Assembly: GCA_002269645.1 (NCBI GenBank)
Contig: NIVC01002910.1
Location: forward strand, 1-35,697
Direction of reading: 5' to 3'
Length of the DNA stretch: 35,697 nt
Source: Macrostomum lignano
Taxonomy: Eukaryota
The position numbers and the translations under genes were made by a program. Below are positions 4,248-35,559 of the stretch, piece after piece. Under the pieces are notes generated by a model that was not told the DNA's origin, did no database searches, and worked only from the letters and a program-made list of their open reading frames with translations. Positions within the stretch are counted from its first letter, which is position 1; each line of letters begins with the position of its first letter.

Positions 4248-5580
4248 TTTTGTGCATGCATTCAAAATAGATTCGCAATTATCAATAATTGGTTCAAATA
4301 CTAGAAATAATACACGATGATATAATCCTATTCGTCTAACAGACAAAAATCTGAGATTAGTTTAGAGAATCTAAGCTTAAAAAATCCAGGCCACTTATTT
4401 TATTCTGCTTATCTGTAGAATTTACAATATCTTTTTGTAATGCTGTATAATTTTTTATTATTTTAATGCATAATAGTAAAATTAACAAAAAACCAAAGTG
4501 ATACTTTTCTTATCGAGCAAGCAGTCATCAATTTTCTGATTGGTATGAAAAAATCAATTTAATTCGAGCACTAACTTAGACTCGCCAGACAACACTAGCC
4601 AAAGCAAATCTTTCTGGAATATTGAAGTTACACTTGTAGAAACATGAAATTAGTATTAAATATTTTTGATAGAATAATTTGGACTCAAATATACTTTTTA
4701 AGAGTTTGTAAGCAAAAGCTTTCAAACTATTTAATAAAAATTATTTATATTATTCTATGATATTTCACACAAGCTATATTGACTTTATACTACAAACAAA
4801 ATGTGAAGATGATATAGATTCAAGTTTAATATTGTTCAGACAATAATATTCATTAATTCTGTATTTAGAGAACTAATATAAATCTATGATTTCACAGACA
4901 ATTAAAGTAGTTTCGAAGAATTTATAAAATATCTAAAAGCATGCCACACAAGTCATAAGCACAAAAATGTCATGAGCAATTAGTGCATTTTTTATTCCTT
5001 ATTGATAGTACTAAATCATAAAGAATTTCGATGGTCATGGATCTCAGGATAATTTATTTCTTTTTAGTACAATAAAACACTTAATATTCAGAGCCGCTGC
5101 ATGTGCCACCAGAAAGGAAAATAAATGATGCATCACTACTCTACTGTTTGACAAAAATGAAACACATAGTTGAAAAATTACTTGCGCAAAGTAAGAAGTT
5201 ACCAGTGTTAGTAATGAGTTCTAAATTTTGTAAAAGTCACGAAATACCATAGCGTCAACAAAGTAAACGGATATCCAAACTATAAAATGATCGTGCTAAA
5301 AACCTTAATCGTAAGAGTGAAACTGAACTAATTTTTTAAGAATAATCTGATACAATACAAGTTACTCTGCAATTCAAAACTCCCTTACAAACTGTTTCCT
5401 GAGGAACAATCTTTTAACAGCATAGAATGTTTACAGCTTACACTGGAAAAAAATAAAACGTTATTGCTCCTGTTTCTCTACATTTTTTAGATGTAGAAAC
5501 GATTCTTAGGATAATCTCGCTGGAGTGTTTTGTTTTACGTCTATTTTTAAAAACCCGTAATCAATTTTTAGTTGACGTGA

Positions 5581-8410: not shown

Positions 8411-9392
8411 CCGTGCAACCCGTCAGTCACTCCCAGATGCGCCGCGGCAATGTTCTCGCACTCAAGCTGGTAGACAGGAAGGCAAGCGGTCGCAAAACTG
8501 TGTACTTGTTGGACACGCACGGTGTTGCTGAAAGCACGGAAGTGAGGCGAGTGATCCGAGGCGGAGCGGAGGAGTCAGTTTTAAAACCGAATTTGGTGCT
8601 GCAGTACAATAAGAACATGGGAGGCGTTGATCGCCTTGATGCAGCACTGCAGCCTTACAGTGCGGGGAGAAGAACATACAGATGGCACCAGAAGCTCGGG
8701 TTCCACATTTTGCTGCAGTTGGTCCGCAATGCCTGGATCTGCAATTGCCAAGGAGGAAGCGATATCAAATTCGTTGAATTTTTGGAAGCTGCGATCCGTA
8801 CTCTCATGGAGCAGACAGGCCGGGGCAAACGTCTGAATACATCGAAGCGCAAGGCCATCTCACAGCACGCGCCATCGAAGCTGCCGCCGACAGATGCCAA
8901 TGCGAGGCCGACAAAGCGATGCAGAGTCTGCTACAGCAATGGTGTGGCCAAAAGAACGGTGTTCGTATGCACTGGTTGCCCAGGAGAGCCCGGGCTGTGT
9001 GCTGTACCATGCTTTCAGAATTGGCACACTGCAGCAGCACAGTAGTTGCACTGGTGGTACGGTGCAAAACTTAATTACGTTCAGAATACGAAATTCAAAA
9101 CGCTCCTCCTAAATGCCTCATCGATGTTTTAAATATTGTTTACCTAATTGTTTTTTGTTCTGTTGTTGTCCGTTTTTAAAGTTTTTGTTATCTATCCTGT
9201 ACTTGCAGTCAAATATAGTTAAAAAATTGCGAAAAAATAACATGGTACGCACAGCATGCCATCCGTGACTTATGGGGATGTCGAAAAGTCATATTTATGC
9301 TAAACCATCTGGGCCATAGACACGTATTCTCAGTGTATGGTTAAATGAGACCCATGGCACGCCTGGCGTGCCATCAGTGTTGGCGGGGTTAA
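8410..9392 (+). mobile_element. 3' half of a piggyBac (PGBD4-like) DNA transposon, with transposase C-terminus and right end GGGG-TTAA
   Basis: RRGNVLALKLVD...YLLDT, KPNLVLQYNKNMGGVDRLD (third catalytic D), RWHQKLGFHILL, and C-terminal cysteine-rich domain RCRVC...FVCTGCPGEPGLCAVPCFQNWH, stop at 9045. GGGG followed by TTAA at 9385..9392. The 5' boundary is approximate. Confidence 0.88.
9354..9392 (+). repeat. Putative piggyBac right terminus with 21-bp interrupted palindrome and TTAA target
   Basis: ATGGCACGC-CTG-GCGTGCCAT at 9354..9374, then CAGTGTTGGCGGGG|TTAA. A degenerate copy ATGGTACGC-ACA-GCATGCCAT lies near 9242..9262. Confidence 0.65.
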
Positions 9393-10065
9393 ATGATAAG
9401 TGTTATTTTATTTGGTTTATTTCATTCTGAATCTCTTTAAGCCTAAAACCATCTCCAACGACTTGATAGAAACTTCCGCATGCGAGGAATCGGAGCGATT
9501 ACTCAGTAATTGCTCTCGCACAGTCAGCGATCCTTGTAGAAAATTTATAGTTTTGCAGCCCCAACAGACGCGTTAGTTTAGAAGAGTTTTTTTCGGCATG
9601 CACGACCGATGTCATACTCGGCCTCAACCATGCCATTAGTAGAACGTACTTACTATCGCTCTCCTGAATAATACGACTTCAATACGCTCGGCTAATGGAT
9701 TTCCTGTCCGGATCATGCTAGTTTGGGCAAGCAAATAATCTGACATCAATGACTGCATCAAAATCTTTGTCGGAAAACCAGCTTGAATGCATTTATAGCA
9801 GTTGCTAGTGTATGCAGACCTGAATATGCAGCTCATTTATTTAGATATTTGATTCTATCTGCAGTATTTGATCTTTGATATTTGCGTGGCTAGTGAATAT
9901 TTTCCTAGCTGAATCTACTCCGTACTCTACTTGATTGATGTAATTTCCCCACGCCAGACACTGTAAGTACGCAGAGAACTGCAAAAATGGAGAGGAAGAT
10001 AGCGAGACGCCTAGAGTCCCCCGCTAAGCATTCACAGCTATCAGGTGTGAGGAGGACGCAACGCT

Positions 10066-10079
10066 GTTGCTTAGGCAAC
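10066..10079. promoter_or_regulatory. RFX X-box motif upstream of the ITPR-like gene
   Basis: GTTGCTTAGGCAAC, with perfect inverted GTTGC/GCAAC half-sites in a 14-bp X-box layout, about 740 bp upstream of the ATG at 10818. Confidence 0.5.
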
Positions 10080-10817
10080 TCAGAGAGGCCTTGAAAGGAT
10101 TTTGGAAGCTACAGTAGGCTGGGAGCATACGATACAGTATGAGAATATTTAATCGCACGAGGGGAGCCCGTGTGACGGAAAAACAATAGCATGAAAAAGG
10201 ATGTGGCGAGAGGGAGATCGCAACTCCCAGTGTGCGCTGTCAGTGGTTATGCTCAGCTCTCGCTCCGCCCTCGCATTCGCCTCCAGGCGGTTCTGCACTC
10301 CAGTCTACAGAGCAATGAGCTGAGGAAGCAGCCTATGACAGGTCTCAGGCAGGTGGCAGCCAATCCGTGGCCATTTCTGCCCCAGATCGCTGCTGCGGAC
10401 CCGCTCCTCAACCGCACTCAGTTGCTACGAGAGGAGAGAGAGAAAGAAGCGAGCATACCTCACCGGCGACTCACGCAGAGCTGTGTGGGATGACCCGCAG
10501 CCAAATTTCTGTTCCAAAACCGTCGCATCTGTTCATCCCAGTAGCGATCCCCAATTCTTCTCCTACTGCTCCATTAGGCCTGCCACTCTCGCGCTCCTTC
10601 CCCGTACACGCTGAATAAGTACACCATTTCCCCATAGCTACGCATCCCGATAGCTTTTAGTCTCGTGTTGTTGAGCCCCCTGGCCCAACAACCCACTAGT
10701 AAATTTTCGGAGCAGCCGACAGGTTCAGAGAGGTTTATAGCCACATCATCGGTCGATATTGATCAGATCCAAGGCACAGTCGACCAGCACTAGTCAGGCG
10801 TCGGCCAGCCGGTGAAA

Positions 10818-13800
10818 ATGGCGGCTATCGCAGAGGATGTTCTCTGCATCGGCGACACCATCGCACTGTACTCCGATGATGTGCTGGGCTATGTGTACGC
10901 CTTGCAGTCCAGGTGAGCTTCTGAAAATTTCCATTGAAGTAGTGCTTCTTCATGAAACTTAATAGTGTTGGAAGTTCACTTATCGATTACTGAAAGCAGG
11001 TCGGTCAGAAGTCTGCTCTCACAAACTCTTAGAATTTGATGGAGTGAGTCCAAATCGATCGTTAAGAAATGAATGTTCTAAATTTGGCTTTTTTGCCCTG
11101 GCATGCAGACAGACCAAATCCTAATAGTGAATGACACACGAGTATTCTATGAGTTTTTTTTGCCTGAGATCGCGGGTCAACCTGCCAGCCTGAGTGGCCG
11201 ATTGAAGACTCCGTTGCCATGCCAATGTCAGACCTGAGGGAGCGCTTATCTTCATATTTAGACACTAACTCACTCACTGCTATCTCGTGAACCGGCTTGC
11301 AGAGCAGAGCTCTCTCTCATCGCCCATTGAAGCCCAACATCTCGACCATGCGCAGTGAATGCGCGGTCTTGCAGATATCAGTGCCGAGCTCAGCCTAGAA
11401 TGACTCGGTGCTGTCTCTTATCAATTCAAGCGCCGCAGGGCACAAAAACAAACGCCGACCTTCTCCTCGCAGAGTCAAACGGTTGCTGTGACCTCAGCTC
11501 AATTGAAATTTTTTTAATCTCTTTAGCAAAAGAACTGTTCAAACTAGCAAAAAAGATGCTCACCAGAGGAGATGCTAAATTTCTGATGAATGTCAACCAT
11601 ATTTTCAAAAGCTTATCTGCATCTGTCCTCTTTTCAGCTCGTCCCATGCTGTGTTGGCAGTGAATAGCAAGGAGGACCGAGTCCAGCCCCGCTGTCCAGA
11701 TGCTCAGGGTGCGTCTTCAGCCAGACAAACTGGCGCAAAGCTGCAGTCGGTTTAAGATAAATTTCCACTTGAGAGAGGGGATTTCGGTTCACAGAGCCCA
11801 GCTGGCCGAAAGGGAGCTGTGTGGAGTTTAGAAGCGAGGACCACCGGGAAGACGTGGGAGAAAAAACGACGCTGTTTAGAACCAACTACTGGTCCCATTC
11901 GATGTCAGGCATAATTTGGTCTAAAAATAGAAATGAAAAACAGAAAATTTTAGACAGCTTCCTATCCCAAACTTTCAGTGCTGTCCTTCAAAATCTGCTC
12001 TGCCAATCGGTACAAGCTGCAGAAGGCCTACAGAAAGCTGGCAGCTGCTCAGTCAAGTACGAGCAGCGTGGCTCAGATGGCTCAGCTGACGCAAGCCAAG
12101 GTGAGTCCAACTGACTGGGTCAGCAGGCATTTGCGAAATGTCTTGAACAACTTTCTAGAGGTTACAAAAGCTAATGAGTCAACTTTTTAAATCATCAAAC
12201 AATGCTTCCTGTACGATATAACCACAAACAATGGATAAGGTACAAAATTCGCTCCCGTGCAGATCGCGGCAGCGGCCGAGGAGGAAGACAACGCCGTAGA
12301 GCAGAGGCGCCAGAAAGGCAAGAAGGTGCTGTACGGCCAGATGGTGCAGCTGCAGCACGTCTTCACCGGAAAGTTCGTGCACATCAGCACACAGAACACG
12401 TCGCCGACGGAGAGCAGCAACATGCAGGTGACGCTGAGCAGCGAGAACGCTGCCTTCGCCTTGTTCCGCGTGATGCCGCGCTTCAAAGTGAAGGGCGAGG
12501 GCGACCTCGTGCAGATTGAGGACCAGGTGGTGCTGGAGAGCGTCAAGAGTCCCGGCCAGTTCCTGCACGTCAGCCGGCACAAGTTCGAAGCCCACATGCC
12601 GGTGTACGCGGACTCCTACGAGCTTAACTTGTCCGTGAGGTTCAGCGGCTTCACTCTTATCAGGCGGTACCACGAGACCGAGGACGAAGCCAACAAGATA
12701 CGAGCCGGACAGCCCGTCAGGTTCTTCCACACCGAGCTGGAGGCCTACCTGGTGTGTGAGGGTACATTCAACGAGCCCGAAGTCGAAGACGTTCACCTGC
12801 GAGTCCGAGCTGTCGAACAGACAAAGCCGAAGACCATGTTCCCGCCCACATCCGCCATCTGCTACTGGCAGCTGGAGTTCTTCGAGGGCTGCATCAGCGG
12901 CGACATCATCAAGTGGGAGCAGCAGGTGCGCATCCGGCACATGTGCACCAGGAAATTCCTCATTATCGACAATGATGGCCGTCTTGCGCTCACGGAAGAC
13001 TGCAAGGACGCCAGGGCCGTGTTCCGGCTGCATCCCGTGCTCAGGGTGAGCTTGGCTTTGTGATTTGGAGTCACAGTGGTGTGAGTTCACAACCGATGTC
13101 CCGTGGCGTAAATGCATGGCAAGGACAAGTTTTCTAGGCGGGACCCAAATGGTAGCAAATTTCAGCGAGTACAGGGTGCGGAGTTACTCACTACCTGATT
13201 TACCTTTTGCATCCCCCCAAATTTTTACTCCCAAGATGGTAAACTTGGAGTCGAATGTAAAGATCAACTACAGCGTAAGTTGGCGGCCTGAGTTCTTTTG
13301 GCAGGCTCATGCCTAGTCTTGTGAAGAGAACATTTGTTAGCATCCAGTTAGCTGTCATTGATTCATTATAATATGTCCGATACTCGACTTGATTTGTTGA
13401 TTAAATGATTTCATAATTTTAGCATTTGGTGGTTCAGTTATTTATTGTCTTAAGACTAATTGACAACATTATAGGAATAATCCTTGATTGATTAATTTGT
13501 ATTTCTAGGAAAGAGATGAAATTGAGGACACAACATATTGCCGAATCGAACACGTGGTCACCGGTAACTGGCTGCATGGTAGCAAAGGTGAGAAGCGTAT
13601 TCCACAAATACAAGCCCTATTTGATTGAACGAGAAGCACCTGTTGACACTGAGTACTAACATACGGCCTCTTTTATTTCAGAGGACTACTCGCGAAAGAC
13701 CCAAAGCGATGAAGCTAGCAGTCACAACTCTATGGCCGGCCTGGTCTGGTCTCAGGCGCCCCTAAAGAAGGTATTTATTTGAAGCCTTTCAGAACACCGA

Positions 13801-16800
13801 TAATGCTGACTCCTGATTACATTCACACGCTAATCGTTAGGCATGTACCCTCTCTGTGATGTGGAGGTTGGCTCTCATGCGTGTGAATTGCAAGAATCGC
13901 GCCACAGTTTAATCGTGAGAGTCAGACGCGTCTACCGCTGAGCTGCCCTGCCCCTTGAATTGTATTTTTACACTCAATAGGCAATGGCTCACTGAAACCC
14001 CATTGAGTTTCAATGACTGCGGAACCACTCCAACTGGAACTGCAGGTGGAGATCGTGTCTGAGATGCAGTTCGACGACGCCTTCACCATCTACTCGGTGG
14101 AGGAGGAGCTGGTCAGGATTTTCAACTTCGCGGCCGGCTGCGTCCCGTTCATTCAGAAGCTCTGCCTGCAGGTAAGGACCGGTGTTGGAGCGGGCGAGCT
14201 GGGTTGTCAGGGAAAAGTGCACACTCTTTCAGGCTGGGAGTTGCGTCAGAGACATGTACTTCAGTACCAGTACGAACAGCAGGCAGTACACGTACGGTAC
14301 AGTATGCTGTCGCCATGAAGTCGATGGCGACTGGGCGCTCAGAGGCGCATCACCAAGACTGCTCTCCCTGACACACATTTTAGCTGCGCGGAGTGCCGTT
14401 TAGCTCAGCCGAGGGGAGTGCATCTGCTGAGGTAAAGACTCAAACTGGTGCTGATTGGCTGATCTGCAGCCTCACTCTGTGACACGTGCTTAGGCTGGTA
14501 ATTTAGCACCTGAGCTAGATTTTTTTAACGGTGAAGTTCACGATCAGTTAAGCAAACATGATATCAGGCTTTGTGCGGTGGTGAATAAAAATTCCAACTT
14601 CAGAGGTGATACCAACCTGACAACAAATTTAACAAGTGAAACTCAGTCAAAACTCGAATTCAAAACTGAACTTTTTTAGCGCAAGCAAGGCGGTCAGTCC
14701 ACACTGAATGCCTATAGAAGTCACACGATCGCCAACGCGCTGAAGGAGCTGCGCGACTTCATGATTGTCAACAGCGAGCCCGTCAAGAAACGACAGAAGC
14801 TGCTCAGGAATCTCAGGGTAAGATCGAGTGGAATTGTGCAACCAACACTTTCGCATGGACTCCATCGTTAAGAGTTTGAATTTTGGAAATGGTTAAATGC
14901 GTAGCTGAAAAAATAGGGGAATGAATGAACTTGTGAATGTGAGTTTGTGAATGTGTAAATTTGTGAATGGGTGAACTTGTGAACGGGTAATTTGTGAATT
15001 TGTGAATGTGTAAATAAAGATAGGCCTTGCAATAGTGCCTTCTCACTGCGGTTCCTGCAGATCGTGGAGCTGCTGGTGCGGCTGCTGCAGACGCCATTCA
15101 GAGGCGGTCCCGACCAGCAGTATCTGGTGAAAATCTTCGTCGAGTGCTACGAGGTCCTGTACACCTACCTGATGGGCGACAGTCGCAAGAACGAGCTGTA
15201 CATTGCTAAGCATATCGACTTCTTCCGCAGCCAGGTTGTGCTGGAGGTGAGAAATTGCTCAACTTTTCCTTTTAATGAGCATTGCTTTCGAGTAAAACTT
15301 TACAGGAATTCCACAGTATGCACTTCAACAATGTGATCCCTCGCTCGCCTCAAATTTCAAGAGCTCGCCAGAATGTGTAAGTAGATCGCCGAGAGAGCGC
15401 GTTTGCACACCTTCTAGACTCGATGTGACTAGCGGGGCTGCTCACACAGTCAGCTCTAGTTGGTGCCAGCCGGATTACCTGCTCAATTTTGTGCCCGCTT
15501 TTGTATCTTGCAGTACCTTGCTTTGTCCTGTCGAACCGGATGCACAGATTTTATTGATACTAGTATAGCATCATTAAAGTACACACTGACTAAGTCGAGC
15601 TCAAAATGTCGAAGACAAGTATTTTACTTTTTGCTTCGAATTTGCTAAAAGTACTGACTGGATTCACGAATGCTACTAACCAGACTACTAACCAGACTAA
15701 CTAATTAGACTTGTCTCCCATTATGCCCCTCTTGCTGTTCCGCAATTGATCCTGTTGTTTTTAAAAAAATTGATGCGACGTTCATCATGATGGTAGCATT
15801 TTAGTTTAGAATTTTTCTGGGAGGCCTGATGTGCTTTGGGACACCTTGGATGTTAATGGGAGGCTTGGAGTGCTTTAGGACACCTCGGATGTTTATGGGA
15901 GGCTTGAAGTGCTTTGGGACACCTCGGATGTTTATGGGAGGCTTGAAGTGCTTTGGGACACATTGGATGTTTATGGGAGGCTTGAAGTGCTTTGGGACAC
16001 CTCGGATGTTTATGGGAGGCTTGAAGTGCTTTGGGACACCTCGGATGTTTATGGGAGGCCTGGTGTGCTTTGGGACACATTGGCTGTTTATGGGAGGCTT
16101 GGAGTGCTTTAGGACACCTCGGATGTTTATGGGAGGCTTGAAGTGCTTTGGGACACATTGGATGTTTATGGGAGGCTTGAAGTGCTTTGGGACACCTCGG
16201 ATGTTTATGGGAGGCTTGGTGTGCTTTGGGACACCTCGGATGTTTATGGGAGGCTTGGTGTGCTTTGGGACACCTCGGATGTTTATGGGAGGCTTGGAGT
16301 GCTTTAGGACACCTCGGATGTTTATGGGAGGCTTGGTGTGCTTTGGGACACCTCGGATGTTTATGGGAGGCTTGGTGTGCTTTGGGGACACCTCGGATGT
16401 TTATGGGAGGCTTGGAGTGCTTTAGGACACCTCGGATGTTTATGGGAGGCTTGAAGTGCTTTGGGACACATTGGATGTGTTATGGGAGGCTTGAAGTGCT
16501 TTGGGACACCTCGGATGTTTATGGGAGGCCTGGTGTGCTTTGGGACACATTGGCTGTTTATGGGAGGCTTGGAGTGCTTTAGGACACCTCGGATGTTTAT
16601 GGGAGGCTTGAAGTGCTTTGGGACACATTGGATGTTTATGGGAGGCTTGAAGTGCTTTGGGACACCTCGGATGTTTATGGGAGGCTTGGTGTGCTTTGGG
16701 ACACCTCGGATGTTTATGGGAGGCTTGGTGTGCTTTGGGACACCTCGGATGTTTATGGGAGGCTTGGAGTGCTTTAGGACACCTCGGATGTTTATGGGAG

Positions 16801-19800
16801 GCTTGGTGTGCTTTGGGACACCTCGGATGTTTATGGGAGGCTTGGTGTGCTTTGGGGACACCTCGGATGTTTATGGGAGGCTTGGAGTGCTTTAGGACAC
16901 CTCGGATGTTTATGGGAGGCTTGAAGTGCTTTGGGACACATTGGATGTGTTATGGGAGGCTTGAAGTGCTTTGGGACACCTCGGATGTTTATGGGAGGCC
17001 TGGTGTGCTTTGGGACACATTGGCTGTTTATGGGAGGCTTGGAGTGCTTTAGGACACCTCGGATGTTTATGGGAGGCTTGGAGTGCTTTAGGACACCTCG
17101 GATGTTTATGGGAGGCCTGGTGTGCTTTGGGACACATTGGCTGTTTATGGGAGGCTTGGAGTGCTTTGAGACACCTCGGATGTTTATGGGAGGCTTGGTG
17201 TGCTTTGGGACACCTCGGATGTTTATGGGAGGCTTGGAGTGCTTTAGGACACCTCGGATGTTTATGGGAGGCTTGAAGTGCTTTGGGACACATTGGATGT
17301 TTATGGGAGGCTTGAAGTGCTTTGGGACACCTCGGATGTTTATGGGAGGCCTGGTGTGCTTTGGGACACCTCGGATGTTTATGGGAGGCTTGGAGTGCTT
17401 TGGGACACCTCGGATGTTTATGGGAGGCTTGGAGTGCTTTAGGACATCTCGGATGTTTATGGGAGGCTTGAAGTGCTTTGGGACACATTGGATGTTTATG
17501 GGAGGCTTGAAGTGCTTTGGGACACCTCGGATGTTTATGGGAGGCCTGGTGTGCTTTGGGACACATTGGCTGTTTATGGGAGGCTTGGAGTGCTTTGAGA
17601 CACCTCGGATGTTTATGGGAGGCTTGGTGTGCTTTGGGACACCTCGGATGTTTATGGGAGGCTTGGTGTGCTTTGGGACACCTCGGATGTTTATGGGAGG
17701 CTTGAAGTGCTTTGGGGACACCTTGGGTTACTTAAAGGAGCAAAAATACGATGGGGGGGCAAGAGTGCTATATAGCCTGTAGACCACTCTCATCAAGAGA
17801 GCCTGAACAAAGAGGCGTTCTTGTTTCATTTTTATTCGAATTGGCGGTCACCAAAAAGGCTCTGCAACAACTTTTTTTTGCACGCAAAATTCGATTCCGC
17901 TTGTATTGAAGCCCCCCCCCCCAACCATCGTCCGGCGTGCGCTACGTGTGTTACCCCACTTCCGCTTCAAAATTTTACCAAAGTGCTTGAGTGTTTCCTA
18001 GAAACCTATAAATTAATACACCGATATCGAACCCGTCTGTAACACTGTCCCAACCTCTGCTGACTCCACTCGCAGGAAGAGGTCGGCCTGAACGCTGCCC
18101 ACATGATCATGGAGCTCATCAAGGACAACCGGAAGATTGTTGACAGAATTCCGCACAGCTACGTGGACGAAATTATCGAGTTATTGAAACAGAACAAGGT
18201 GAGTTTCGGCTCGAGTGCGGCCGGCTGTTTTCAGTGACAAATTATTCTGCAACTGATATTTTTGCCAATCGTGCAGAATTTCCGGTATCTCGAACTACTG
18301 AGCGTCTTGTGCGTCTGCGACGGTTTGAGCATGCCGGAGAACCAGAACTACATCACGGATAAGTGGCTGGTGGAGGGCCAGAGCTTCAGTCTGGTCTTCT
18401 TCACGGATCTAGGACAGACAATTGGCAAGGAGAAGGACAAAGTGTTCGTGTCTGTGGACAACAAGCGACGCTGGGTCTCGTTGGCTCAGTTCGCCAAAGA
18501 TGTGAGCGGGGTGCCATGTCGAGAATAAACTGAATACCAAAACCCAAGCCAAACCGTTTAAGCCAATCATTGAATGACCAGTGAGGAACCCGATCATTGA
18601 ATGACCAGTGAAGAATCCGGTCATTGATTGACCAGTGAGGAACCCGATCATTGAATGACCAGAGAGGAATCCGATCATTGAATGACCAGTGAAGAATCCG
18701 GTCATTGAATGACCAGTGAAGAATCCGGTCATTGATTGACCAGTGAGGAACCCGATCATTGAATGACCAGTGAGGAATCCGATCATTGAATGACCAGTGA
18801 TGAATCCGATCATTGAATGACCAGTGAGGAATCCGATCATTGAATGACCAGTGAGGAATCCGATCATTGAATGACAAGTGAGGAATCCGATCATTGAATG
18901 ACCAGTGAGGAACCCGATCATTGAATGACCAGTGAGGAACCAGATCATTGAATGACCAGTGAGGAACCAGATCATTGAATGACCAGTGAGGAATCCGATC
19001 ATTGAATGACCAGTGAGGAACCCGATCATTGAATGACCAGTGAGGAACCAGATCATTGAATGACCAGTGAGGAACCCGATCATTGAATGACCAGTGAGGA
19101 ATCCGATCATTGAATGACCAGTGAGGAATCCGATCATTGAATGACAAGTGAGGAATCCGATCATTGAATGACAAGTGAGGAACCAGATCATTGAATGACC
19201 AGTGAGGAACCCGATCATTGAATGACCAGTGAGGAATCCGATCATTGAATGACCAGTGAGGAATCCGATCATTGAATGACCAGTGAGGAATCCGATCATT
19301 GAATGACAAGTGAGGAATCCGATCATTGAATGACCAGTGAGGAACCCGATCATTGAATGACAAGTGAGGAACCAGATCATTGAATGACAAGTGAGGAACC
19401 AGATCATTGAATGACCAGTGAGGAACCAGATCATTGAATGACCAGTGAGGAATGACGAGTGGTAACCCAAATATTGAAAGAACCGAGGAACCCTTAGACT
19501 CCCCTCTGATTTTTAGTACCAGAAGGCGGTCGCGGCGTCGAAGACAAACGCGGACGGCTCGGTGCAAATCACGCACGTCAAGTCGCGCAAACGGCAGCTC
19601 AACAAGCGCAAATTGAGCCCAGAAGAGGTGAGACAGCGAGATGGAGAAAGTTAATTGTTATCTAGTTCAAACTTTGCAGTGCGAGACAGTGAGAAGTTCG
19701 TTAAGTTAACCAAACTAGTGTTCACTTATTTTATCAACCAATTTGAAGCTAAAAGCATATGGCCGGAACAAAGACGCTTTGGAGGAGATGGTGAGATGGA

Positions 19801-22800
19801 GAAAATAGCTTTAGCCTCACCGTTCAGTCACTCTGAGTGCATCGTGCTTCACATTCTCGCAAAGCGTACCCTGCGTGAAGTCCCCCATTTCTCTAGATTG
19901 CGTACCATTGTCAATCTCGGCAGGTTTACTTCCAGAATTTACAGCTTTCTATAAGTATCAATGACTCATGATACCACCAAAATTTCCAATAGCGTTCCAT
20001 CATTTTCCTGTATTCAACTTCCCATACGCTTCAGCAAAACTCGACAATCATAGAAGAATTCATGTTCCTGCAGCACCAGCTAGACTTGTTCGGAAAACTC
20101 TGCCAGGTAAGACGGGATCAGGATCAGGGATCGGGATCAGGGATCGGGATCAGGGATCGGGATCAGGGATCGGGATCAGGGATCGGGATCAGGGATCGGG
20201 ATCAGGGATCGGGATCAGGGATCGGGATCAGGGATCGGGATCAGGGATCGGGATCAGGGATCGGGATCAGGGATCGGGATCAGGGATCGGGATCAGGGAT
20301 CGGGATCAGGGATCGGGATCAGGGATCGGGATCAGGGATCGGGATCAGGGATCGGGATCAGGGATCGGGATCAGGGATCGGGATCAGGGATCGGGATCAG
20401 GGATCGGGATCAGGGATCGGGATCAGGGATCGGGATCAGGGATCGGGATCAGGGATCGGGATCAGGGATCGGGATCAGGGATCGGGATCAGGGATCGGGA
20501 TCAGGGATCGGGATCAGGGATCGGGATCAGGGATCGGGATCAGGGATCGGGATCAGGGATCGGGATCAGGGATCGGGATCAGGGATCGGGATCAGGGATC
20601 GGGATCAGGGATCGGGATCAGGGATCGGGATCAGGGATCGGGATCAGGGATCGGGATCAGGGATCGGGATCAGGGATCGGGATCAGGGATCGGGATCAGG
20701 GATCGGGATCAGGGATCGGGATCAGGGATCGGGATCAGGGATCGGGATCAGGGATCGGGATCAGGGATCGGGATCAGGGATCGGGATCAGGGATCGGGAT
20801 CAGGGATCGGGATCAGGGATCGGGATCAGGGATCGGGATCAGGGATCGGGATCAGGGATTTTCTTATCTCGCTTTCCGTTACAAATTAGGGTCGCAACGC
20901 AAAGTCAATCGAGGTGGTCACAAAGCGGCTCAACTACCTCACCTGGGATGAGGCTTTCATCTGCCTCACTGATGAGGATCTGCCGGACCAGCTGCGAGCC
21001 AAGTACTGCGAGCTCATCACCACCATGTTCGTGGACGTTGACGACAACATCAGCGTGCTGGACAGGATCGACCTCACCTTCGTATATGACGATGTTTCAA
21101 AGCATTCGCAGGCCAAGACGAGTGAAATGGTTAGTTGAGCTCTAATTTATTAAACTGAATTGATGGCTTTGAGAAGCTGCTTCGCGGCTTGCCGGGAAAG
21201 GAATTTAAAGTTTCTAAGCTTAGAATTATTGTATTAAGAGCAACAAACCCACTCAACTCTTCCCGCAGACGACTCTGAGAAACGCCTCAACCCAGCGCTA
21301 CTTCCCAGCCTTGCGCGACTGGTTGGCCAGCTTTCTGGACCAGAACCACGACATGACGGCCTCGGAGGTCGGGCACAACATTCTGCTTGCGCACGTGATG
21401 CAGATGCTGCATTATCTGGTGAGGTTCGGATACTACAACTCCACCACCGACATCAAGAAGCTTCTCAAGCCGCTGCTGGATCTGCTGGACGGACGAAACG
21501 ACAAGCCGCTGCCCAGAGGTGCATAATTTATTGTAGTTCAGGCTTCACAGCTTTTAGCAAGAATCCTGATTTTTTCCTGACGAATAATGGGTCTCTTTTA
21601 AAAATTACTCCAATCCCATTTCACTTGCAATTTGATCCACACTGACAATTGCAAATTTGATTCCGAATATCTGGGACGCTTTTCGATGCTGTATTTCAAA
21701 CTGCGATCCCATGGCCGCACTTTCCAGGCGCCTTCTCCGGCGGGATGGTGGCAGATGTGGCAGGAAGTAAATCAGCATTTTTTGGCTTTCTAGAGTCAAA
21801 TATTTATCAGCATTTTAAAACTATAAACTTCTCTGCTTGAACTATTTAAACTGTACTTTACCATTCTCTACGATACTCTTACATCATTTCGTACACAAAC
21901 ATACCGCCAGTTCTGTACACTGCCAAAACACTTCCTTGACCTATCCTGAAACTTAAATTTACTTGCTTCGCTAAAATTTTTTATAGAACAAAAACGTATG
22001 ACGCTACGGCTTGTAGTTTGAGAGCCGACGAACCTTTTTGCGAACACGTAGTTTAGTTTTGATGTCAAATTCCGAAACTAATTCCGAATCGAATCTACAA
22101 TATCTGCAGCTGCCACAACTGACTATGACAAAGTGCTGCAGCACTACCAGACGGTGGATCGCTACAAAAAATCCAGGGAAACGAAGGCTGTGGTTGATGC
22201 AAAGCACCAGTAAGTTGGGGCGTTTACAAAACTGCCGGTTGACGTGTCAGTATTAGTGAAAGAAAATGGTGACACCTTTCAGAGCGATGCGAGTTCTGGA
22301 TCTGTTTTTCAACTTTCGATTCAATGTTCGCCTAAAAAGGTTTGTGGCTGAGTTCAAGGATGTTCAGTTTATGGCGCAGAACACCTTGAGTAGCGCTCAG
22401 GATCCGCTGGCTGGCTTACTGAACGAGAATTACGACCTAAATAAAAGGTGAGCTGATCCGTTCAAAGCTTGCTAGTCTCATACTTTATGGAGTGCATACA
22501 AATATAGCCGTGATGAAGTAACCTGTTAACCTTATTCAGCATCGATACGGTTGCGAGTCAGCGACTGGCAGAAATGTTCACCGAGTCCTCTTATTTCAAG
22601 GACTTCGACATCGTCAATGTTTTGCTCGTACGTCTTGATACGCTCGACAATTACAAAAAAACTGCATAACGTATAGGGATAAGTTAGGCTTTTCCGAAAA
22701 TTTAAAAGCACCACGTTTCAAAGCTTCTTTTGAAACCGCTGCAGGACCTGAGCAACTATGAGTACCCGAAGATGGTGCAGATGTCAATGTGGCTGCTCAA

Positions 22801-25800: not shown

Positions 25801-28800
25801 GAACCTTTGAGGCAGGTTTGGCATCGATGCTTGTAGCTCGTCGAATTTGCGCCATTGGTCCAAGCGCAGAACTGTTGCAGCAGGTCAGCAGTCAGAAACA
25901 GCTTGAAAAACGCAGCTGGATCGTCATCAGCAGTCTCTGGCCTCGGCAAGTCAGGATCCACACCAGGCATTCCCCAGAACTCGGGGTCTGCATCTGGCCG
26001 TTGATCCTGCCCAGCTTCCCGTGCCACCCAAGCATCAGTTGACAAGTCTCCGACGTCTTCATTTGGCTGGAGATGCAGGTCCTCCTCCTCTTCATCTTTA
26101 CCCTTGTCCGCTGTTAGCCAGCCTTCCTCCTCCTCTAGTTCGGAGTCGGTATCCGGATCAAAATGCATTTGAGCCGCAGCCATGACAAACACTGTCCGAC
26201 ACTTGGAAATTATTGCACAAAATAAAGTTGCTGATCGATGATTTAATTAATTAATTGGCACTTGACTTTGATCATTTAGCTTCAAACTTTACCCACCCAC
26301 CCGTCCATCCACCCCACTCCACTTTGTTTTTTGCTTTCATGTTTATCGTTTATTGCTACGAGTATAAGCTAATCCGCCGGCTATCGCTGGCTACGGGGGT
26401 GTAAAAATATGCTGTAATAGTCTATGGCCTGCTCGGGTTAACTTGAGCTGTTGTTCGTCCACGTCAGCGAGCGAGCTATCTGTTGTTATTTAGCACAGCG
26501 GCATTTATACCTGAGCAAGTTTGCTGTTCCAGTTCTGTCCACAGACACTGCTGCACTGCGTTGCAGGAAGCAGCCAAGTCTGCAAGTGATCGACTATGAG
26601 GCTCAGAACCCTGTGCCGGTGAAGATTCAAATGTAATGTAATATCCAAAAATTCATGCATCAATTTTGTTGCCAACGGCATGAGTGTATACAGAAATATC
26701 AATATTATTAGTCGTATAGCCACGATTTTCATTCCTAATAACGGACCAAAAATCACAATCATAATTCCTTTTTCACGCATGCTTGTGCAAGTATTTATTA
26801 CTAAATTATTACTCATTTTTCTCCCTATGCGGGCTTACATTATTAGCCGCATCTGCTGACAATACCGCTTTTCAGGCACAAGAGGCACTCCTCAAAGAGG
26901 AGGCGATCGCACAAGCACAGGCTGGAGTCGCTGCCCCAAGTGTAATATAAAAATCTGCTCCGCATGCGCTCTCCTCTGACCTTTGAGTGCCGTGGGGTGG
27001 TAGTTCCGCTTTCGGTTTTAATCTGCTTTAGATAGCTCGTCCCTGTCGCAAGCATCCCTGAGTTTGTCTCTTCTCTGCTAGCTTTAAGATACTCGTAGGA
27101 CTTTTGGTTAATGCAGAGCAGTGAGATTCAGCTGACTCATGCTTTGCAGTTTTACCTTAACTTTTTTGTATTTTCATCGGAACTGAAGTCTCTGAGCCAC
27201 TGAAATCTGAGCCACTTCGGGTTACTGAGCCCGTTTCCATTTTCGATTTTCCTGATCTAAGAATTAGTAGATATGTGTCAAATAGAAAAATGCACTTTTA
27301 CTCATGCTAAAAAGTACATGATACCCTTTCTGTTTTATTGATGCTGTGCCTGCAAAATTTGATAATCAGAAAGTTAATAGGAGAACCGTCCCGTTGCAGC
27401 GAGATGGAAGACCCATCCAGCAAGGAGAAGCAGGACATGACAGACGAGGCTGCTCACGGCACCCTGAAATACCTGTTCGAGGGAGCCCTCCCCGTGGTCA
27501 ATGTACGTACAGTAAAATTACGCGCACAGGTTGCCTTAAGATTGTTCAGTAAATAACCACTTGAAAATTCTCTTCTAGGCCTTTTTCAAGAGCATTTACA
27601 TCAAGGACTTGGAGGATCACCCGAACGAAATAGAAGAGATTAACAAACTCGCCAAGATTCTCATCGTAAGAGAAAAAGATGTCCTTTGATGGTAGAATCT
27701 GTTTTTTTACCCATGATACAAAAGATTCTGCTAATTTACTGGCCTGCTGTCCCGTTTACGCAGAACTTCATCGAAGCAGCAATGCCACTAATCTCGGAGG
27801 AAAAGTACGTAAAGTACCTGCTGAGCAGTGCAACCAGCCTGCTCACAGTTTGCACCCTGCCTGCTAAAGTGAGTAGCGCTGAAACTGGTTGTTTGAAAAT
27901 AAAAAAGCGTAACATATTTCATACACAGTGTTGATTGTTTTTCAACAAACACCTGCAGGACAGGCAAATTAGCAGTCTAAAGGTGAAACAAAAGGTTTGA
28001 ATGGGACAGAAGTTACAATACTTTCTTGAATCTTAGTTACCACGAACACTGATTCCTGGACAAATTAAATTAATAATTAAGCATTATAGCGCTACGGAAA
28101 TTGCATTATTGATTATTGATATAAGTCCGACCGAGCTTGTAATCTATGCTCTAAAATGACTCAGCTATCAAAAATGCTAATATTGATTTTTGGATAATGC
28201 TTAAGATAAAAGGCGCCAATGTGCAGTAGTTTTCTCTGATTTATGACAGAAATTGTATCCTCGTACAGTAAGACTTGTGCATTGTGCGCCTTCGTAATAT
28301 AAAATTCACTTGATTCTGACATCTGACAAAGCGAAAAAATGAAACTCATCAAACGATTCGATGAAATGCCTTTTGAATTTCCGAATGGCTATCTAAAACA
28401 TTAATGGCCTTTCCTTTCTCCGATCAAACTCTGACAGGCTATTGAAGAATTTCGTGGAAAATACGGAGGAGGCGTCCAAATCAACTGGGACGTCAGAAGC
28501 GAGGCTCGAAAGGTGCTTAAGGAAACAGATTGTATTTTTGAAAAGGCATTATGAACAGAAAATTTGAGAAACATAAATATTTAATCTAATAAAACTCCAG
28601 CGATACGAAGAGTACTACTCATCCGAGGAGGAGCTGAACGTGCAGTTAAACGTGTTTGCAACCAACTACAGCATCTCTTACGGAGGCGAGAACACCGTCA
28701 AAGACCAGATCGGCTTTCCCAGCGACCAGGGTTCGTTTAAGAAGTTGATGCGCTTCTTGAAGACAGAAGTATTTAACCTAGGCGTTTTTACCCTTAGTCA

Positions 28801-31800: not shown

Positions 31801-34800
31801 CTCGATCATATGAAGACCGTCAACTTCGAGGCAATGGTCGAGAAAGATGCTGACGCTGACGAGCAGCGACTCATCTGGGATTTCTACCAATCAAACACAA
31901 TGTCCATTGAGATCCTTAAGGACAATAATCTCCAGAAAGTCTACTTCCGCGTCAAAGATAAGAAGGTGCTGAGAGAGGAAGTGAAGGATCGCTTTAAGTA
32001 CGATGTGGACAGGTAAAGTTTCCTAAGTTTTCAATCTAACTTCTCTTGACTTCTTAATAATGCGTCTTCCGAAATATACTCGTAGAACTAAAAATAATCC
32101 CTAACAAGCTCTAATACTTGCCCCAAACTAAGATTTCTGTCATCAACATGCCCCTAGAGAAGATATACGAATTCCTAGTCCTATTACGGAATAAGATTTT
32201 TGATGAACTCACTATAATCTGACGGAGTTTCTTAACGGGAGAAAGACCAAACATAAGCGATCACAGCTTTATATTAAACTTAAACAGATCCTCTCCAACT
32301 AATAAGCTGCGCGACTTCTCCGACTGGCTTCGCGAGATCATCAAGGACATCAAGTGGCAGAAGCGAATCCTCAGCAACCCTCTCGGCTCCTTCTTCGTGC
32401 ACGGCTGGAAGGCGTTCAACATCCTGTGCATCATCCTGAGCCTGGCAATCAGCATTGTGGTGCTGAGCAGCTGGGACACGCCTGAAAAAATCACGGATCC
32501 TGTGCCAGTTCGAGCGGATGGAGCCGTTTATGCGACCTATGCTCTTGGAATCGTGCACAATATACTCAGCCTGTTCATTCTGATCAGTTTCTTCCTCAGC
32601 AATCATCCATATTTTCCGTCTATGCAACAAATTCGTACCTTTTGGTCGTAAGTTACCGCTATAAGCGTGCATTATTTAAAAAATTCCCAGCCTTGTGTCT
32701 GAATAAACAAAAAGTATATTTAAATAAGTTTCTGCTCTATCAATCGAATTCGCTTTCATATTGATTAACCTGCACTTGAATCACCACATTCAGTATACGG
32801 GTTTTCTCTGAGGGTTTATTGCTTGTTATTCTCACTTTCTATAATATAGGTCTAGCGGTTTAAGGTTCTTACAGCTCTTTATTTCTTCTATCAGACCGTC
32901 AGAGAAAACCGTATAAACTGACGGGATCTCCTAGTATCTAGGCTGAATTTGAATCTCACGAGTATTTCGCTCTGCGTAACTTTTAAGACAAATAATTGTT
33001 TTTTAAGTCTTGGATTTGAGCCAGTTGAGATCTGAAAACTGCGTCAGGAAGAAGCGCCGCTCCAGTTTGAGATGGGCGTCTATTTTATACAGATTGGCAT
33101 TTTTTACCTATACCGCCGCCGGTGGGGTGTCTTCGCGTGGTTAGCAACGGCGGGGGGGGGGTTTAAACAATAAAAATCTGGGACTCAGTCCCCTAGTTGT
33201 ACACGAATTTAGTTAGTTCTAGTAGGTTGCTAAGTGTGTGGGTTAGAGATTATTCGGGGTTTTGCAAATCCATGCGTTGAGTTGGATAAATTTTGGGATG
33301 GAAATATAACAGAAAAAGAGCTTAGTCTAAGAGAGCTCTCTTAACTCTGTCCATAGATGATCACACAGTCCTCTCTCTCTCTCGGTTGTCAAACTACTTG
33401 GGGTTGATCTCGCCTTCTTGGGCAGCTTCGGGTTGGATAGAAGTCCGTGGGCGGGCCGTGCGACTCTCCTCTGAAGTTCGCCAGGTTCTGACGCGTGCCA
33501 CGGGCCGATTGCTCTTTTTGACGTCATCCTAAATCGGGCCTCTCCTCGGTTTGCTTCTCCCAGCCGGTTTGAGCGCCATTGTGCCTGCGGCGGGGTGTTG
33601 CTACTCACTGGAATGGAAAGAGGCTTTATTAGATTCGGTCATTCATATCTGAATTGACTTTTGTTGCTGCTTTTGTTCGCCTTCTAATAGCTATCTAGGG
33701 GGTTTCATTGTGCTCTTCTGCCTCGCCCTTCACTGCGCCTGGGCATTTCATACTTTTCTACCTATCTTCTAACGTAGGGTAAAACTTCAGATTTCTAACT
33801 CTTTTACTCAGGAAGCTGATCGGAATTGGCTCCAAGACGGCCACAGAAGACGAGGACAACGCCGAAGGGAAGCTTCAAGCCTCCGTGTTCAGCTTTAGCA
33901 CGTTCTACTACATCGCCTTCCTGCTGATGTCAGTGCTGGGTACCGTCTTCTATGGCTACTTCTTTGCCTTCCATCTGCTGCACATTGCCAACCACAACCA
34001 GCTGCTGGCTAGGGTTATCCAGGCTGTTACCAAGAACGGTAAGGATATATTTGCTTCAGATTCGTGAACGGATATTATGGTAGACTCATAAATTTCTATC
34101 AGCTTGAAGAGCGGTGGATTGCTGACAACTAGTACTCTAAATAATACTTGTACTGGCATTGCAGGCTTATCACTATTATGGGTACTCATCTACTCCTTGG
34201 CTTTCTTCTACATCTACGCGCTGCTCAGTTTCGCTTTCTACCGAGAAATTTATGACTCCTCAACTGGCAACTTCTGTGAGACCATGTACCAGTGCACAGT
34301 CACCGTGATCCACAGGGGCCTCATCGCCGGAATCTACGACGTAAGCATTGGTTAAGAACTCGAAATTCTTGTTTGATGCTCTTTGTTTGCCTGTAAATTT
34401 TCACCTGTGAATAATTAAATAAAGTAAAAAACCCGTCTGAACTTTATCCCAGGAGGGCGATGTAAGTAATCGATGAATGTTTCCAGCTACTTCCTTGATA
34501 TCGTTGTTGTCTACCTTAGTCAATTTCCTATTGTAACCAATAATTCGTACCGGTTTGCCACCTTAATAGTCCGTAACTTCCTACTCTGAGTCTAATGCTA
34601 CTGCGCACGACACTTAAGTTTGAACTGTTTATTATTTGTGCATTTTGCACGCAGCACTGACGTGTGAGGCCCCTAGTCACTATCGACTAAAGCTACCAAA
34701 TGTGTAATGCTTCGAAATAGCAACCATCATGATAATTTAAATCGTAAAAGTCGAATGGCGAAACCGTTTCAGTATCTACCGGTTCCCGAAAACAGACCTT

Positions 34801-35559
34801 TCAATTATCACCTGGCAAAATCGGTATTCGACATCTCCTTCTTCATCATTATCACCACCATCGGACTGAACATCATCTTCGGCATCATCGTGGACACCTT
34901 CAGCGAGCTGAGAGACTCCAAATGGCAGATCGACCAGGACATGACATCCGTGTGCTTCATCTGCTCCAGGAATGCCTACGATTTCGAGCATCATGGAGAA
35001 GTGAGTCACTGTTTTGACTGGCTCCGGATCAGGGCTTTACAAAAAAAACAATTTTAAGTCTTGAGCACACAAGCTTTTACTGCCCAGCTTTCTATAAAAA
35101 TGAGCTCAACTTGCTTTTAGGGATTCGAGAAGCACGTGAAAGAAGAGCACAACCAGTGGGCCTACCTGTTCTTTATGCTCTACCTGGAGGAGACCCGAGA
35201 GAATGACTACACTGCCATTGAGCTCTATGTATCTCGACTAGTGAGTTCGACACATTTTATTGTCTACCAACTGAACATTTTTCTGAAGCAAGTGAGAATT
35301 ACGTTTGGTGTAACAGATTCCTAAATTTGAACGGGCGTATGATCTTCATAATCGTCAAAGATGAGGTTCATTTAAACAAAACGTAAAATAACTCACTAAC
35401 CCTCACCCTAATCTATTCTAGTACGAAAAAGAAAAGCTGGACTTCTTTCCGCTGAACAAGTCCATAACGCTGGAGGCGGCCGAGGACAACCAAGAAGAGC
35501 TGAAGCTCGAGACACTGATGACACAGGTCTCATTTCTGGTGCACAAGTGGAAAGAAGAA
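10818..35559 (+). CDS. ITPR: Atypical inositol 1,4,5-trisphosphate receptor-like Ca2+ release channel (IP3R/RyR superfamily), multi-exon, 3' end beyond the window
   Basis: Hand-spliced core exons, all GT-AG and phase-consistent with no internal stop: 10818-10912, 11638-11708, 11979-12100, 12263-13045, 13509-13587, 13682-13770, 14046-14171, 14680-14817, 15061-15246, 18076-18198, 18277-18501, 19517-19627, 20035-20106, 20890-21129, 21269-21518, 22110-22209, 22283-22447, 22540-22627, 22745-22989, 23185-23308, 24348-25135, 27400-27502, 27579-27665, 27764-27868, 28438-28512, 28601-28730, 29051-29192, 29279-29425, 30265-30519, 30615-32012, 32288-32647, 33812-34038, 34165-34340, 34773-35000, 35121-35240, 35422-35559. 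Motifs: [11 protein letters not shown]; [15 protein letters not shown] (beta-trefoil); RQKLLR; RKN; LSVLCVCDG; [32 protein letters not shown] (RIH-associated); six hydrophobic segments; [17 protein letters not shown]; CFIC...H...[10 protein letters not shown]. Confidence 0.95.
13880..13954 (-). mobile_element. Possible degenerate tRNA-derived (SINE-head-like) sequence in a channel-gene intron
   Basis: The minus strand reads GGGGCAGGGCAGCTCAGCGGTAGACGCGTCTGACTCTCACG...GTGGCGCGATTCT. This has an A-box-like AGCTCAGCGG and a weak B-box-like GCGCGATTC. The stems do not pair cleanly, so it is not a functional tRNA. Confidence 0.3.
14920..15016. repeat. Short degenerate tandem repeat (about 16-bp period, core TTGTGAA) in an intron
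   Basis: Six TTGTGAA cores are visible between 14931 and 15008. Confidence 0.7.
15818..17726. repeat. Intronic minisatellite, 39-bp unit GGAGGCTTGAAGTGCTTTGGGACACCTCGGATGTTTATG, about 49 copies, with a 470-bp higher-order duplication
   Basis: 13-aa periodic ORFs appear on both strands. Identical 131-aa ORFs at 16187..16582 and 16657..17052 give a 470-bp offset (12 units plus two 1-bp insertions). Confidence 0.97.
18565..19453. repeat. Intronic minisatellite, 27-bp unit GATCATTGAATGACCAGTGAGGAATCC, about 33 copies
   Basis: Directly visible. It gives 9-aa periodic minus-strand ORFs (IPHWSFNDR / MIGFLTGHS). Confidence 0.97.
20114..20859. repeat. Near-perfect intronic 13-bp array (GGGATCGGGATCA)n, about 57 copies
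   Basis: Directly visible. It fills about 745 of the 783 nt of intron 20107..20889. Confidence 0.98.
21728..21766 (+). other. Candidate 39-nt cassette exon of the ITPR-like gene (phase 1/1)
   Basis: TTTCCAG acceptor and GTAAAT donor. It matches the host intron phase and adds [13 protein letters not shown] without a stop. Confidence 0.45.
25171..26441 (-). mobile_element. 5' half of a decayed piggyBac (PGBD4-like) transposon in a channel-gene intron
   Basis: Acidic N-terminus, [90 protein letters not shown] (first catalytic D). It has several frameshifts and the second-D region is degraded. A possible left end TTAA-CCC lies at 26435..26441. Confidence 0.87.
26567..26632 (+). other. Candidate 66-nt exon of the ITPR-like gene (phase 2/2)
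   Basis: TTGCAG acceptor and GTAATG donor; encodes [22 protein letters not shown] in frame. Confidence 0.45.
26876..26941 (+). other. Candidate 66-nt exon of the ITPR-like gene (phase 2/2)
   Basis: TTTTCAG acceptor and GTAATA donor; encodes [23 protein letters not shown] in frame. Confidence 0.45.
29570..29602 (+). other. Candidate 33-nt micro-exon of the ITPR-like gene (phase 2/2)
   Basis: TCTTTCAG acceptor and CAG|GTAAAG donor. The frame is preserved and open across both junctions. Confidence 0.55.
32791..32920. mobile_element. Possible 130-bp MITE-like element with about 27-bp imperfect terminal inverted repeats
   Basis: Left CAGTATACGGGTTTTCTCTGAGGGTTT versus reverse complement of the right end CAGTTTATACGGTTTTCTCTGACGGTCT. 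No clear target-site duplication. Confidence 0.55.
34453..34461 (+). other. Candidate 9-nt micro-exon (GAG GGC GAT, Glu-Gly-Asp) in the pore loop of the ITPR-like channel
   Basis: CTGAACTTTATCCCAG acceptor and a perfect GTAAGT donor. It is phase 0/0 inside the phase-0 intron 34341..34772. Confidence 0.55.

Follow-up and report, generated by a model that had tools for sequence, protein, structure and literature searches.

The filter intron of an IP3R-B-type channel gene

The DNA analysed here is a 35,697-nucleotide (nt) stretch of contig NIVC01002910.1, referred to throughout as the window. It carries a plus-strand gene whose predicted product is an intracellular channel of the IP3R-B type, a relative of the inositol trisphosphate and ryanodine receptors. 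An intron interrupts the coding sequence of the channel's selectivity filter, and within this intron lies a 9-nt open segment that is probably a genuine micro-exon, inserting three residues immediately after the acidic residue of the filter. The gene is laid out around the pore as follows.

33812-34038, plus strand: exon for the transmembrane helix before S5, placed by spliced alignment to a Dimorphilus-type locus (L002) and to P0074; donor ACG/GTAAGG
34165-34340, plus strand: exon covering S5 and the pore helix and reaching halfway through the filter; ends in phase 0 and aligns to ITPR2/3 and RyR1-3
34341-34452, plus strand: intron upstream of the micro-exon, if the micro-exon is used; 112 nt, acceptor ctttatcccag
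34453-34461, plus strand: candidate micro-exon GAGGGCGAT; 9 nt, Glu-Gly-Asp, phase 0/0; from splice-site scores, an intron scan and simulations
34462-34772, plus strand: intron downstream of the micro-exon, if used; 311 nt, donor GAT/GTAAGT, acceptor ccgtttcag/TAT
34341-34772, plus strand: single intron, if the micro-exon is skipped; 432 nt, phase 0
34773-35000, plus strand: exon covering the last part of the filter loop, S6 and the beginning of the CxxC / H..H region; follows tttcag and starts YLPVPEN

The locus had previously been read from its letters alone, and the main observations of that sequence-only reading hold: the pore region is split by an intron between GIYD and YL (exons 34165-34340 and 34773 onward), and a 9-nt open segment encoding EGD in phase 0/0 is present in the filter intron at 34453-34461. 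The exon upstream of the intron ends ...GLIAGIYD and is followed by the donor gtaagc, and both intron junctions (34340 and 34773) are in phase 0. The segment itself, GAGGGCGAT, is preceded by ctttatcccag, followed by gtaagt and free of stops. Inclusion, through the junctions 34340-34453 and 34461-34773, would give a spliced transcript containing GACGAGGGCGATTAT. A tandem acceptor, CAGGAG, is nested at the candidate, and its second acceptor would give a 6-nt Gly-Asp form (34456-34461).

Other accounts of the segment were considered and ruled out. Extension of the exon past the donor at 34341, in place of a micro-exon, runs into a stop after four codons. An origin of the 432-nt intron from a repeat or transposable element was rejected because no second copy exists in the window or in related loci. 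A recursive splice site was likewise rejected: its 3' and 5' sites would have to adjoin, which they do not, and an intron of 432 nt is short.

Splice signals of the candidate micro-exon

Splice sites were scored with position weight matrices built from the gene's own exons, at first from 16 donors and 14 acceptors and later from 28 homology-backed exons. With leave-one-out scoring, the candidate donor GAT/GTAAGT falls at the 54th percentile of real donors, and the CAG acceptor of the 9-nt form at the 86th percentile of real acceptors. Among the 1,355 AG..GT pairs spaced 3-30 nt apart in the 16.2 kb of introns in this gene, the candidate is the sole one in which both sites are this good, and the minus strand of the whole window contains no AG..GT pair with both sites as good. 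When 20,000 introns of 432 nt were simulated, an equally good, in-frame and stop-free candidate arose in 0.1% (both sites required) to 0.4% (sum-of-scores criterion). Real acceptors have C at position -3 in 23/28 cases and T in 5/28, a pattern to which the acceptor of the 9-nt form conforms. The GAG acceptor of the 6-nt form scores 0.4 bits, which places it beneath every one of the 28 real acceptors; G at -3 occurs in none of these.

The surroundings of the candidate were also compared with those of the gene's other exons. The 112-nt upstream intron belongs to the modal class of the gene, in which 12 of the 37 modelled introns measure 76-126 nt, and a CTGAC-like sequence, tCTGAAc, lies 11 nt upstream of the candidate AG, with similar spacing at several real acceptors. 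In a dynamic-programming gene model the micro-exon was the only exon of 30 nt or less to be retained at an 18-bit intron penalty, and it was lost at 22 bits; this model calls too many tiny exons when intron penalties are low, and its use was confined to ranking and domain scans. The candidate has the usual marks of a micro-exon, being no longer than 27 nt, frame-preserving and flanked by AG and GT sites that score well. Neural micro-exons that depend on SRRM4 carry a UGC motif shortly before their 3' splice site, and no TGC occurs in the 60 nt upstream of 34453. The splice-signal statistics support the micro-exon without being conclusive.

The modelled acceptors of the gene have some peculiarities of their own. 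They are mostly CAG (23/28), with weak polypyrimidine tracts, and in many of them a CTRAY-like motif is found no more than 7-13 nt from the AG, which is an unusually short branch-point distance. Two further short open segments, at 27959-27982 (24 nt) and 19680-19695 (16 nt), have strong sites by the sum of scores and may be either small exons or decoys.

Family assignment of the channel

The remaining features of the channel gene are listed below. Exon boundaries are approximate in the N-terminal half, and the 2,604-residue (aa) model of the protein is crude.

10798-35559, plus strand: gene for an intracellular channel of the IP3R-B type; crudely modelled with about 38 exons and continuing past the window end, which it reaches about 25 codons short of the stop
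10798-10912, plus strand: N-terminal exon, with an 18-residue reading in the gene model
35121-35240, plus strand: further C-terminal exon, from the gene model and homology
35422-35559, plus strand: further C-terminal exon, from the gene model and homology

By tblastn, residues 48-2541 of a Patella caerulea protein (KAK6195687; 2,567 aa) map to 11966-35553. Together with the N-terminal exon, this means that the gene takes up the final 25 kb of the window. Pfam analysis of the 2,604-aa model identified Ins145_P3_rec, MIR, two RYDR_ITPR (RIH) domains, RIH_assoc and Ion_trans, all above their gathering scores; neither SPRY nor RyR-repeat domains were matched in this crude model. The domain set, together with the six-helix channel domain, identifies the predicted protein as a member of the IP3R/RyR superfamily. 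When PDB sequences were searched with HMMER, the channel domain matched the solved IP3R1-3 and RyR1-3 structures with E values of 1e-33 to 1e-40, the best values for the two families being nearly equal (1e-40 for IP3R and 2e-37 for RyR). The domain aligns to RyR as one stretch and to IP3R as two, because the long luminal S5-P loop of the canonical receptors (IP3R-A) is absent from the window channel.

The best relatives are proteins annotated as "ITPR-like", which share 47-60% identity with the channel domain, compared with about 35% for human or solved IP3R-A and RyR. They come from spiralians (Patella, Sinanodonta, Tubulanus, Capitella, Dimorphilus, Paralvinella, Macrostomum and Intoshia), deuterostomes (Saccoglossus and Branchiostoma) and unicellular holozoans (Capsaspora CAOG_04510 and Salpingoeca). 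In a comparison that supports the exon 34773-35000, the 15 best relatives are 46-65% identical across about 260 aa, and P0024 is the closest among them, with 76% identity over its 131 aa. No protein with more than 78% identity to the channel, and hence no transcript-derived protein of this species, was found in a search of 5.8 billion sequences, and a metagenome scan gave more distant relatives only.

Both the taxa of these relatives and the intermediate position of the channel match the IP3R-B subfamily, to which we assign the gene on similarity rather than on a tree. The taxa fit those given for IP3R-B in a paper on the leech (PMC7992859), which credits the definition of the subfamily to Alzayady et al. 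2015 and names a leech member, ip3rb2. According to the same paper, the subfamily has been lost from vertebrates, Drosophila and C. elegans. IP3R-B channels occur in most invertebrate phyla, but not in vertebrates, flies or nematodes. One IP3R-B member is a marker of leech touch neurons, and the physiology of the subfamily "largely remains to be determined" (PMC7992859). Beyond the leech paper, almost nothing on IP3R-B was found in a body of literature that did not include the 2015 defining paper.

The altered filter as a trait of the clade

The solved ITPR2 and ITPR3 read GLRNGGGVGD(V/I)L at the filter, in agreement with the canonical motif quoted in the sequence-only reading, and its statement that the window channel lacks a glycine-rich filter is also borne out. 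The motif GGG(I/V/L)G(D/E) is absent, the loop reads GLIAGIYD(EGD)YL, and the HMMER alignment retains only the aspartate. In the form that skips the 9 nt, AGIYD-YL pairs with GGVGD-IL of the template (nhglrngggvgdilr) across a two-residue gap. Thus, two glycines have been deleted, and the D of GIYD corresponds to the canonical filter aspartate. Those IP3R-B relatives that keep the canonical filter read GGGLG[DE]-ALP where the window gene has GIYD-YLP, so the skipped form retains the ancestral acid-x-L-P spacing. The filter aspartate is therefore already in place without the micro-exon, and EGD would add residues behind that acid; the suggestion that EGD "restores" a GD-x-L ending fails, since skipped AGIYD-YL already aligns to GGVGD-xL. 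When EGD is included, HMMER instead matches the GD of the insert to the canonical GD, with one residue in surplus.

Pore loops were extracted from 176 relatives. The canonical GG[GA]xG[DE] is present in 78/176, but in just 4/30 of the best-scoring relatives, being absent from the other 26; relatives that keep it include the Salpingoeca proteins. Bilaterian loops read GLIGDLFE (Patella vulgata type), GIVEGMYSTFE (Elysia type) or GLLESFHE (Saccoglossus), and the closest subgroup, comprising the window gene, Macrostomum, Dimorphilus, Paralvinella and Intoshia, follows the pattern G[LF]I.G[IL][YF][DES]-[YF]L.VPE. As judged from these alignments, loss of GGGxGD is a trait of the bilaterian IP3R-B clade and is not special to the window gene. 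Within the clade, GGGxG[DE] has shrunk to G-(I/L)-(Y/F)-(D/E), with the acid and the x-L-P retained. The rewritten filter noted in the sequence-only reading thus proves to be standard in a named clade (26/30), albeit one that is functionally uncharacterised. Bilaterian IP3R-B members have collectively given up GGGxGD while keeping one acid, which raises the question of which ions they conduct.

The filter intron in related genes

A phase-0 intron directly after the filter acid is common to the window, Macrostomum lignano, Paralvinella, Intoshia, Patella vulgata and Elysia. The only exceptions are the Dimorphilus-type contig (L002) and a TARA metagenome contig (L001), which lack it. Because it is conserved across spiralian IP3R-B loci, the intron is old. 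Its length is 333 nt in M. lignano, about 3 kb in Paralvinella and 54 nt in Intoshia. The intron was located at the following positions.

Window: 34341-34772
L010 (M. lignano): 7832-8164
L003 (Paralvinella palmiformis JAODUP010000861.1): 8284-11252
L004: the 54-nt intron
L011: 1629-1924
L013: 1666-3400

The sequence closest to the window gene is P0024, from TARA metagenome scaffold_340418, with 78.6% identity over S5-S6; an allele, P0222, occurs in a second sample. Both read GLFD-QD-YVPLPENR in one uninterrupted genomic exon. Relative to the skipped form, QD is a two-residue insert that ends in D and sits at the exact junction of the window candidate. Three adjacent introns are absent from the TARA contig. 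This absence would fit intron loss by way of a spliced mRNA copy that contained a micro-exon; an independent indel or an imprecise intron deletion is also possible.

The Patella vulgata and Elysia paralogues have the intron, and their annotated models contain no micro-exon. A micro-exon common to the whole family at this intron was ruled out, since the intron occurs without one in Patella, Elysia, Macrostomum and Intoshia.

The Paralvinella locus L003 has a separate peculiarity: the 176-nt exon for S5, the pore helix and the filter is duplicated in tandem (8108-8283 and 9469-9644). The two copies, which share 59% protein identity, end in GLIISLFE and GLINGLFD. Acceptor and donor are intact in both, an arrangement like that of mutually exclusive exons, and the deposited model uses the first copy only.

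Is the 9-nt segment an exon?

Taking the locus as a whole, the explanation that we favour, with somewhat more confidence than doubt, is an IP3R-B-type tetrameric cation channel of a spiralian animal, possibly a flatworm-like one, with a genuine 9-nt micro-exon right after the filter acid. The donor at 34341 would pair with the strong CAG acceptor 112 nt downstream, and the GTAAGT donor at 34462 would then be joined to the acceptor at 34772. Splicing would thus yield the loop ...GIYD-EGD-YLPVPEN..., in which three residues, among them two acids, are added at the luminal mouth just past the filter aspartate. Inclusion would probably be the default, because the first acceptor is strong and the introns are short. 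By analogy with the acids after the GD of the RyR filter, which published mutagenesis has addressed, the two extra ones could raise cation conductance or alter divalent selectivity.

Several results weigh against this reading and would fit a chance pseudo-exon, in which case the spliceosome always passes over the 9 nt, the product has GIYD-YL like the proteins of Macrostomum, Dimorphilus and Paralvinella, and the QD of the TARA sequences is an unrelated indel. The M. lignano locus (76% identity) has the intron, yet its model reads GIYS-YL with no insert, and no good micro-exon candidate was found in that intron, which is filled with a short tandem repeat. Sequences from Dimorphilus-type (no intron), Paralvinella and Intoshia loci likewise have no insert after the filter acid. 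The skipped-form loop, at 28 residues, has the length conserved in the family, found in five close relatives and also in RyR, and it aligns to canonical GGVGD-xL with the acid in place. A second intron, after S6 (the K/W intron, following ...SELRD(S/A)K), has been lost in both the window and M. lignano, whose exon layouts around the pore are otherwise identical, a hint that the window comes from a flatworm-like animal; it is retained in Paralvinella, Patella, Elysia, Intoshia and the TARA relative. The latter is therefore perhaps not the true sister, and its QD could accordingly be an independent indel or the remnant of an imprecise intron loss. Bare in-frame open AG..GT segments are, moreover, frequent in introns, with 9 in the 432-nt intron and about 60 in the roughly 3-kb Paralvinella intron, and the sequence-only reading had scanned many introns; when the per-intron simulation is scaled to 16 kb of intron, a decoy this good is expected in about 4-16% of such genes. 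The weight matrices, finally, were built on just 16-28 sites. Set against these points, the two splice sites match real ones in strength and have no equal as a pair in the 16 kb of introns, the spliceosome would have to ignore a high-scoring CAG acceptor 112 nt past the donor, and it would be left to coincidence that the closest relative has an insert at this very junction. On balance, we regard a pseudo-exon as a doubtful, though by no means negligible, explanation. The micro-exon proposed in the sequence-only reading is thus credible on its splice-signal statistics and on the QD insert in the nearest relative, even with four groups of relatives that lack an insert, and we put it at somewhat better than even; the comparative evidence by itself is suggestive only.

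If the micro-exon is real, it need not be constitutive. As originally proposed, both GIYD-YL and GIYD-EGD-YL would be made, and inclusion that varied with tissue or stage would tune the charge and length of the filter mouth; such a regulated cassette is a subset of the real-exon reading and, in our estimate, rather unlikely. Both forms look structurally viable, the skipped form being the norm of the family and an insert-bearing loop occurring naturally in the TARA relative. Among very short animal exons, alternative use is common. The tandem S5/pore-helix exons of Paralvinella suggest that the pore has been diversified at the level of splicing within the family, and in molluscs and annelids, splicing is known to switch the filters of NALCN and Cav3 (PMC4436565). 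With strong sites on either side and a short intron upstream, however, constitutive inclusion is favoured, and no UGC motif of an SRRM4-type neural programme lies within 60 nt before the acceptor. A micro-exon of 6 nt, GGCGAT (Gly-Asp), made through the distal GAG of CAGGAG and giving GIYD-GD-YL, would equal in length the two-residue insert of P0024 (D-QD-Y) and, by inspection, would align without gaps to GLRSGGGVGDVL. The very low score of its GAG acceptor makes this form highly improbable.

The ancient intron that splits the filter can apparently host a micro-exon, as in the window, or adjoin duplicated pore exons, as in Paralvinella. Should the splice switch prove true, it would parallel the tandem duplication of the pore exon in the Paralvinella orthologue.

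Other features of the window

Four minisatellites were found, three of which fall in introns of the channel gene. The array at 20114-20859 is open in all three frames and was wrongly modelled as an exon.

526-969: minisatellite, 21 nt x 21 copies
15814-17723: minisatellite, 39 nt x 49 copies
18566-19453: minisatellite, 27 nt x 33 copies
20114-20859: minisatellite, 13 nt x 57 copies

Upstream of the channel gene lie a gene for an IQUB-like protein and the remains of mobile elements. The former consists of two long GC-rich exons, and its product matches the IQUB-like domain PF25805 (E 2e-53) and a ubiquitin-family domain. The retrotransposon is decayed, with reverse transcriptase and integrase in separate open reading frames, and adjoins a transposase fragment.

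1525-4346, minus strand: IQUB-like gene
5941-8520, minus strand: decayed retrotransposon pol
8233-9045, plus strand: C-terminal fragment of a piggyBac transposase (DDE_Tnp_1_7 and zf-Tnp_2)

Comparison with known channels and micro-exons

The window gene resembles other IP3R-B members in its IP3R-like domain order, without SPRY or RyR repeats, and in a short loop between S5 and the pore helix, as in RyR. It differs from most of them in that it may carry a lineage-specific three-residue insert after the filter acid. With canonical IP3R-A (ITPR1-3) it shares the domain architecture, and the pore helix, S6 and the CxxC / H..H region align (E about 1e-33 to 1e-40); the filter, by contrast, is AGIYD rather than GGGVGD, two residues shorter, and the long luminal S5-P loop is missing. 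We take the IP3-binding residues of IP3R1 to be R265, T266, T267, G268, R269, R504, K508, R511, Y567, R568 and K569. In the window gene (exons 12263-15246), R265, K508, R511, R568 and K569 are identical and R504K is a conservative change, whereas T266V, T267R, G268A, R269P and Y567S depart from IP3R1.

The likeness to RyR lies in the single uninterrupted alignment of the channel domain (E about 2e-37) and in the 28-residue length of the skipped-form loop. The RyR filter is followed by an acidic run, GDEIED, and with EGD included the mouth of the window filter, D-E-G-D, would recall it. The window protein is nevertheless about 2,600 aa long as opposed to about 5,000, and it lacks SPRY domains, RyR repeats and GGGIGD. 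Thus, by its predicted size, its domains and its filter, the window gene is not a ryanodine receptor.

Animal micro-exons (at most 27 nt, often neural and SRRM4-dependent) resemble the candidate in having a length that is a multiple of three, in keeping the frame and in their strong flanking sites, as well as in placing an insert in a surface loop of a signalling protein. The window candidate differs from them in having no upstream UGC.

Molluscs, annelids and flatworms are known to have splice-switched filters in NALCN (exon 15a/b, EEEE versus EKEE) and in Cav3 (exon 12a/b; PMC4436565), so splice control of a filter is not new in itself; for IP3R or RyR, we found no report of it in the literature. 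Alternative splicing of the 9-nt cassette, which we hold only tentatively and think unlikely, would be the first splice-controlled change in filter length and charge in the IP3R/RyR superfamily. The window gene and these channels would have in common an alternative splicing that changes pore-lining residues, and with them ion selectivity, in the same animal groups. NALCN and Cav3, however, are four-domain channels of the plasma membrane, with mutually exclusive exons of full size and a demonstrated function, whereas the window gene would encode an intracellular tetramer with a 9-nt cassette. If inclusion of the cassette is regulated, splice-tuned ion selectivity would extend from plasma-membrane channels to intracellular release channels.

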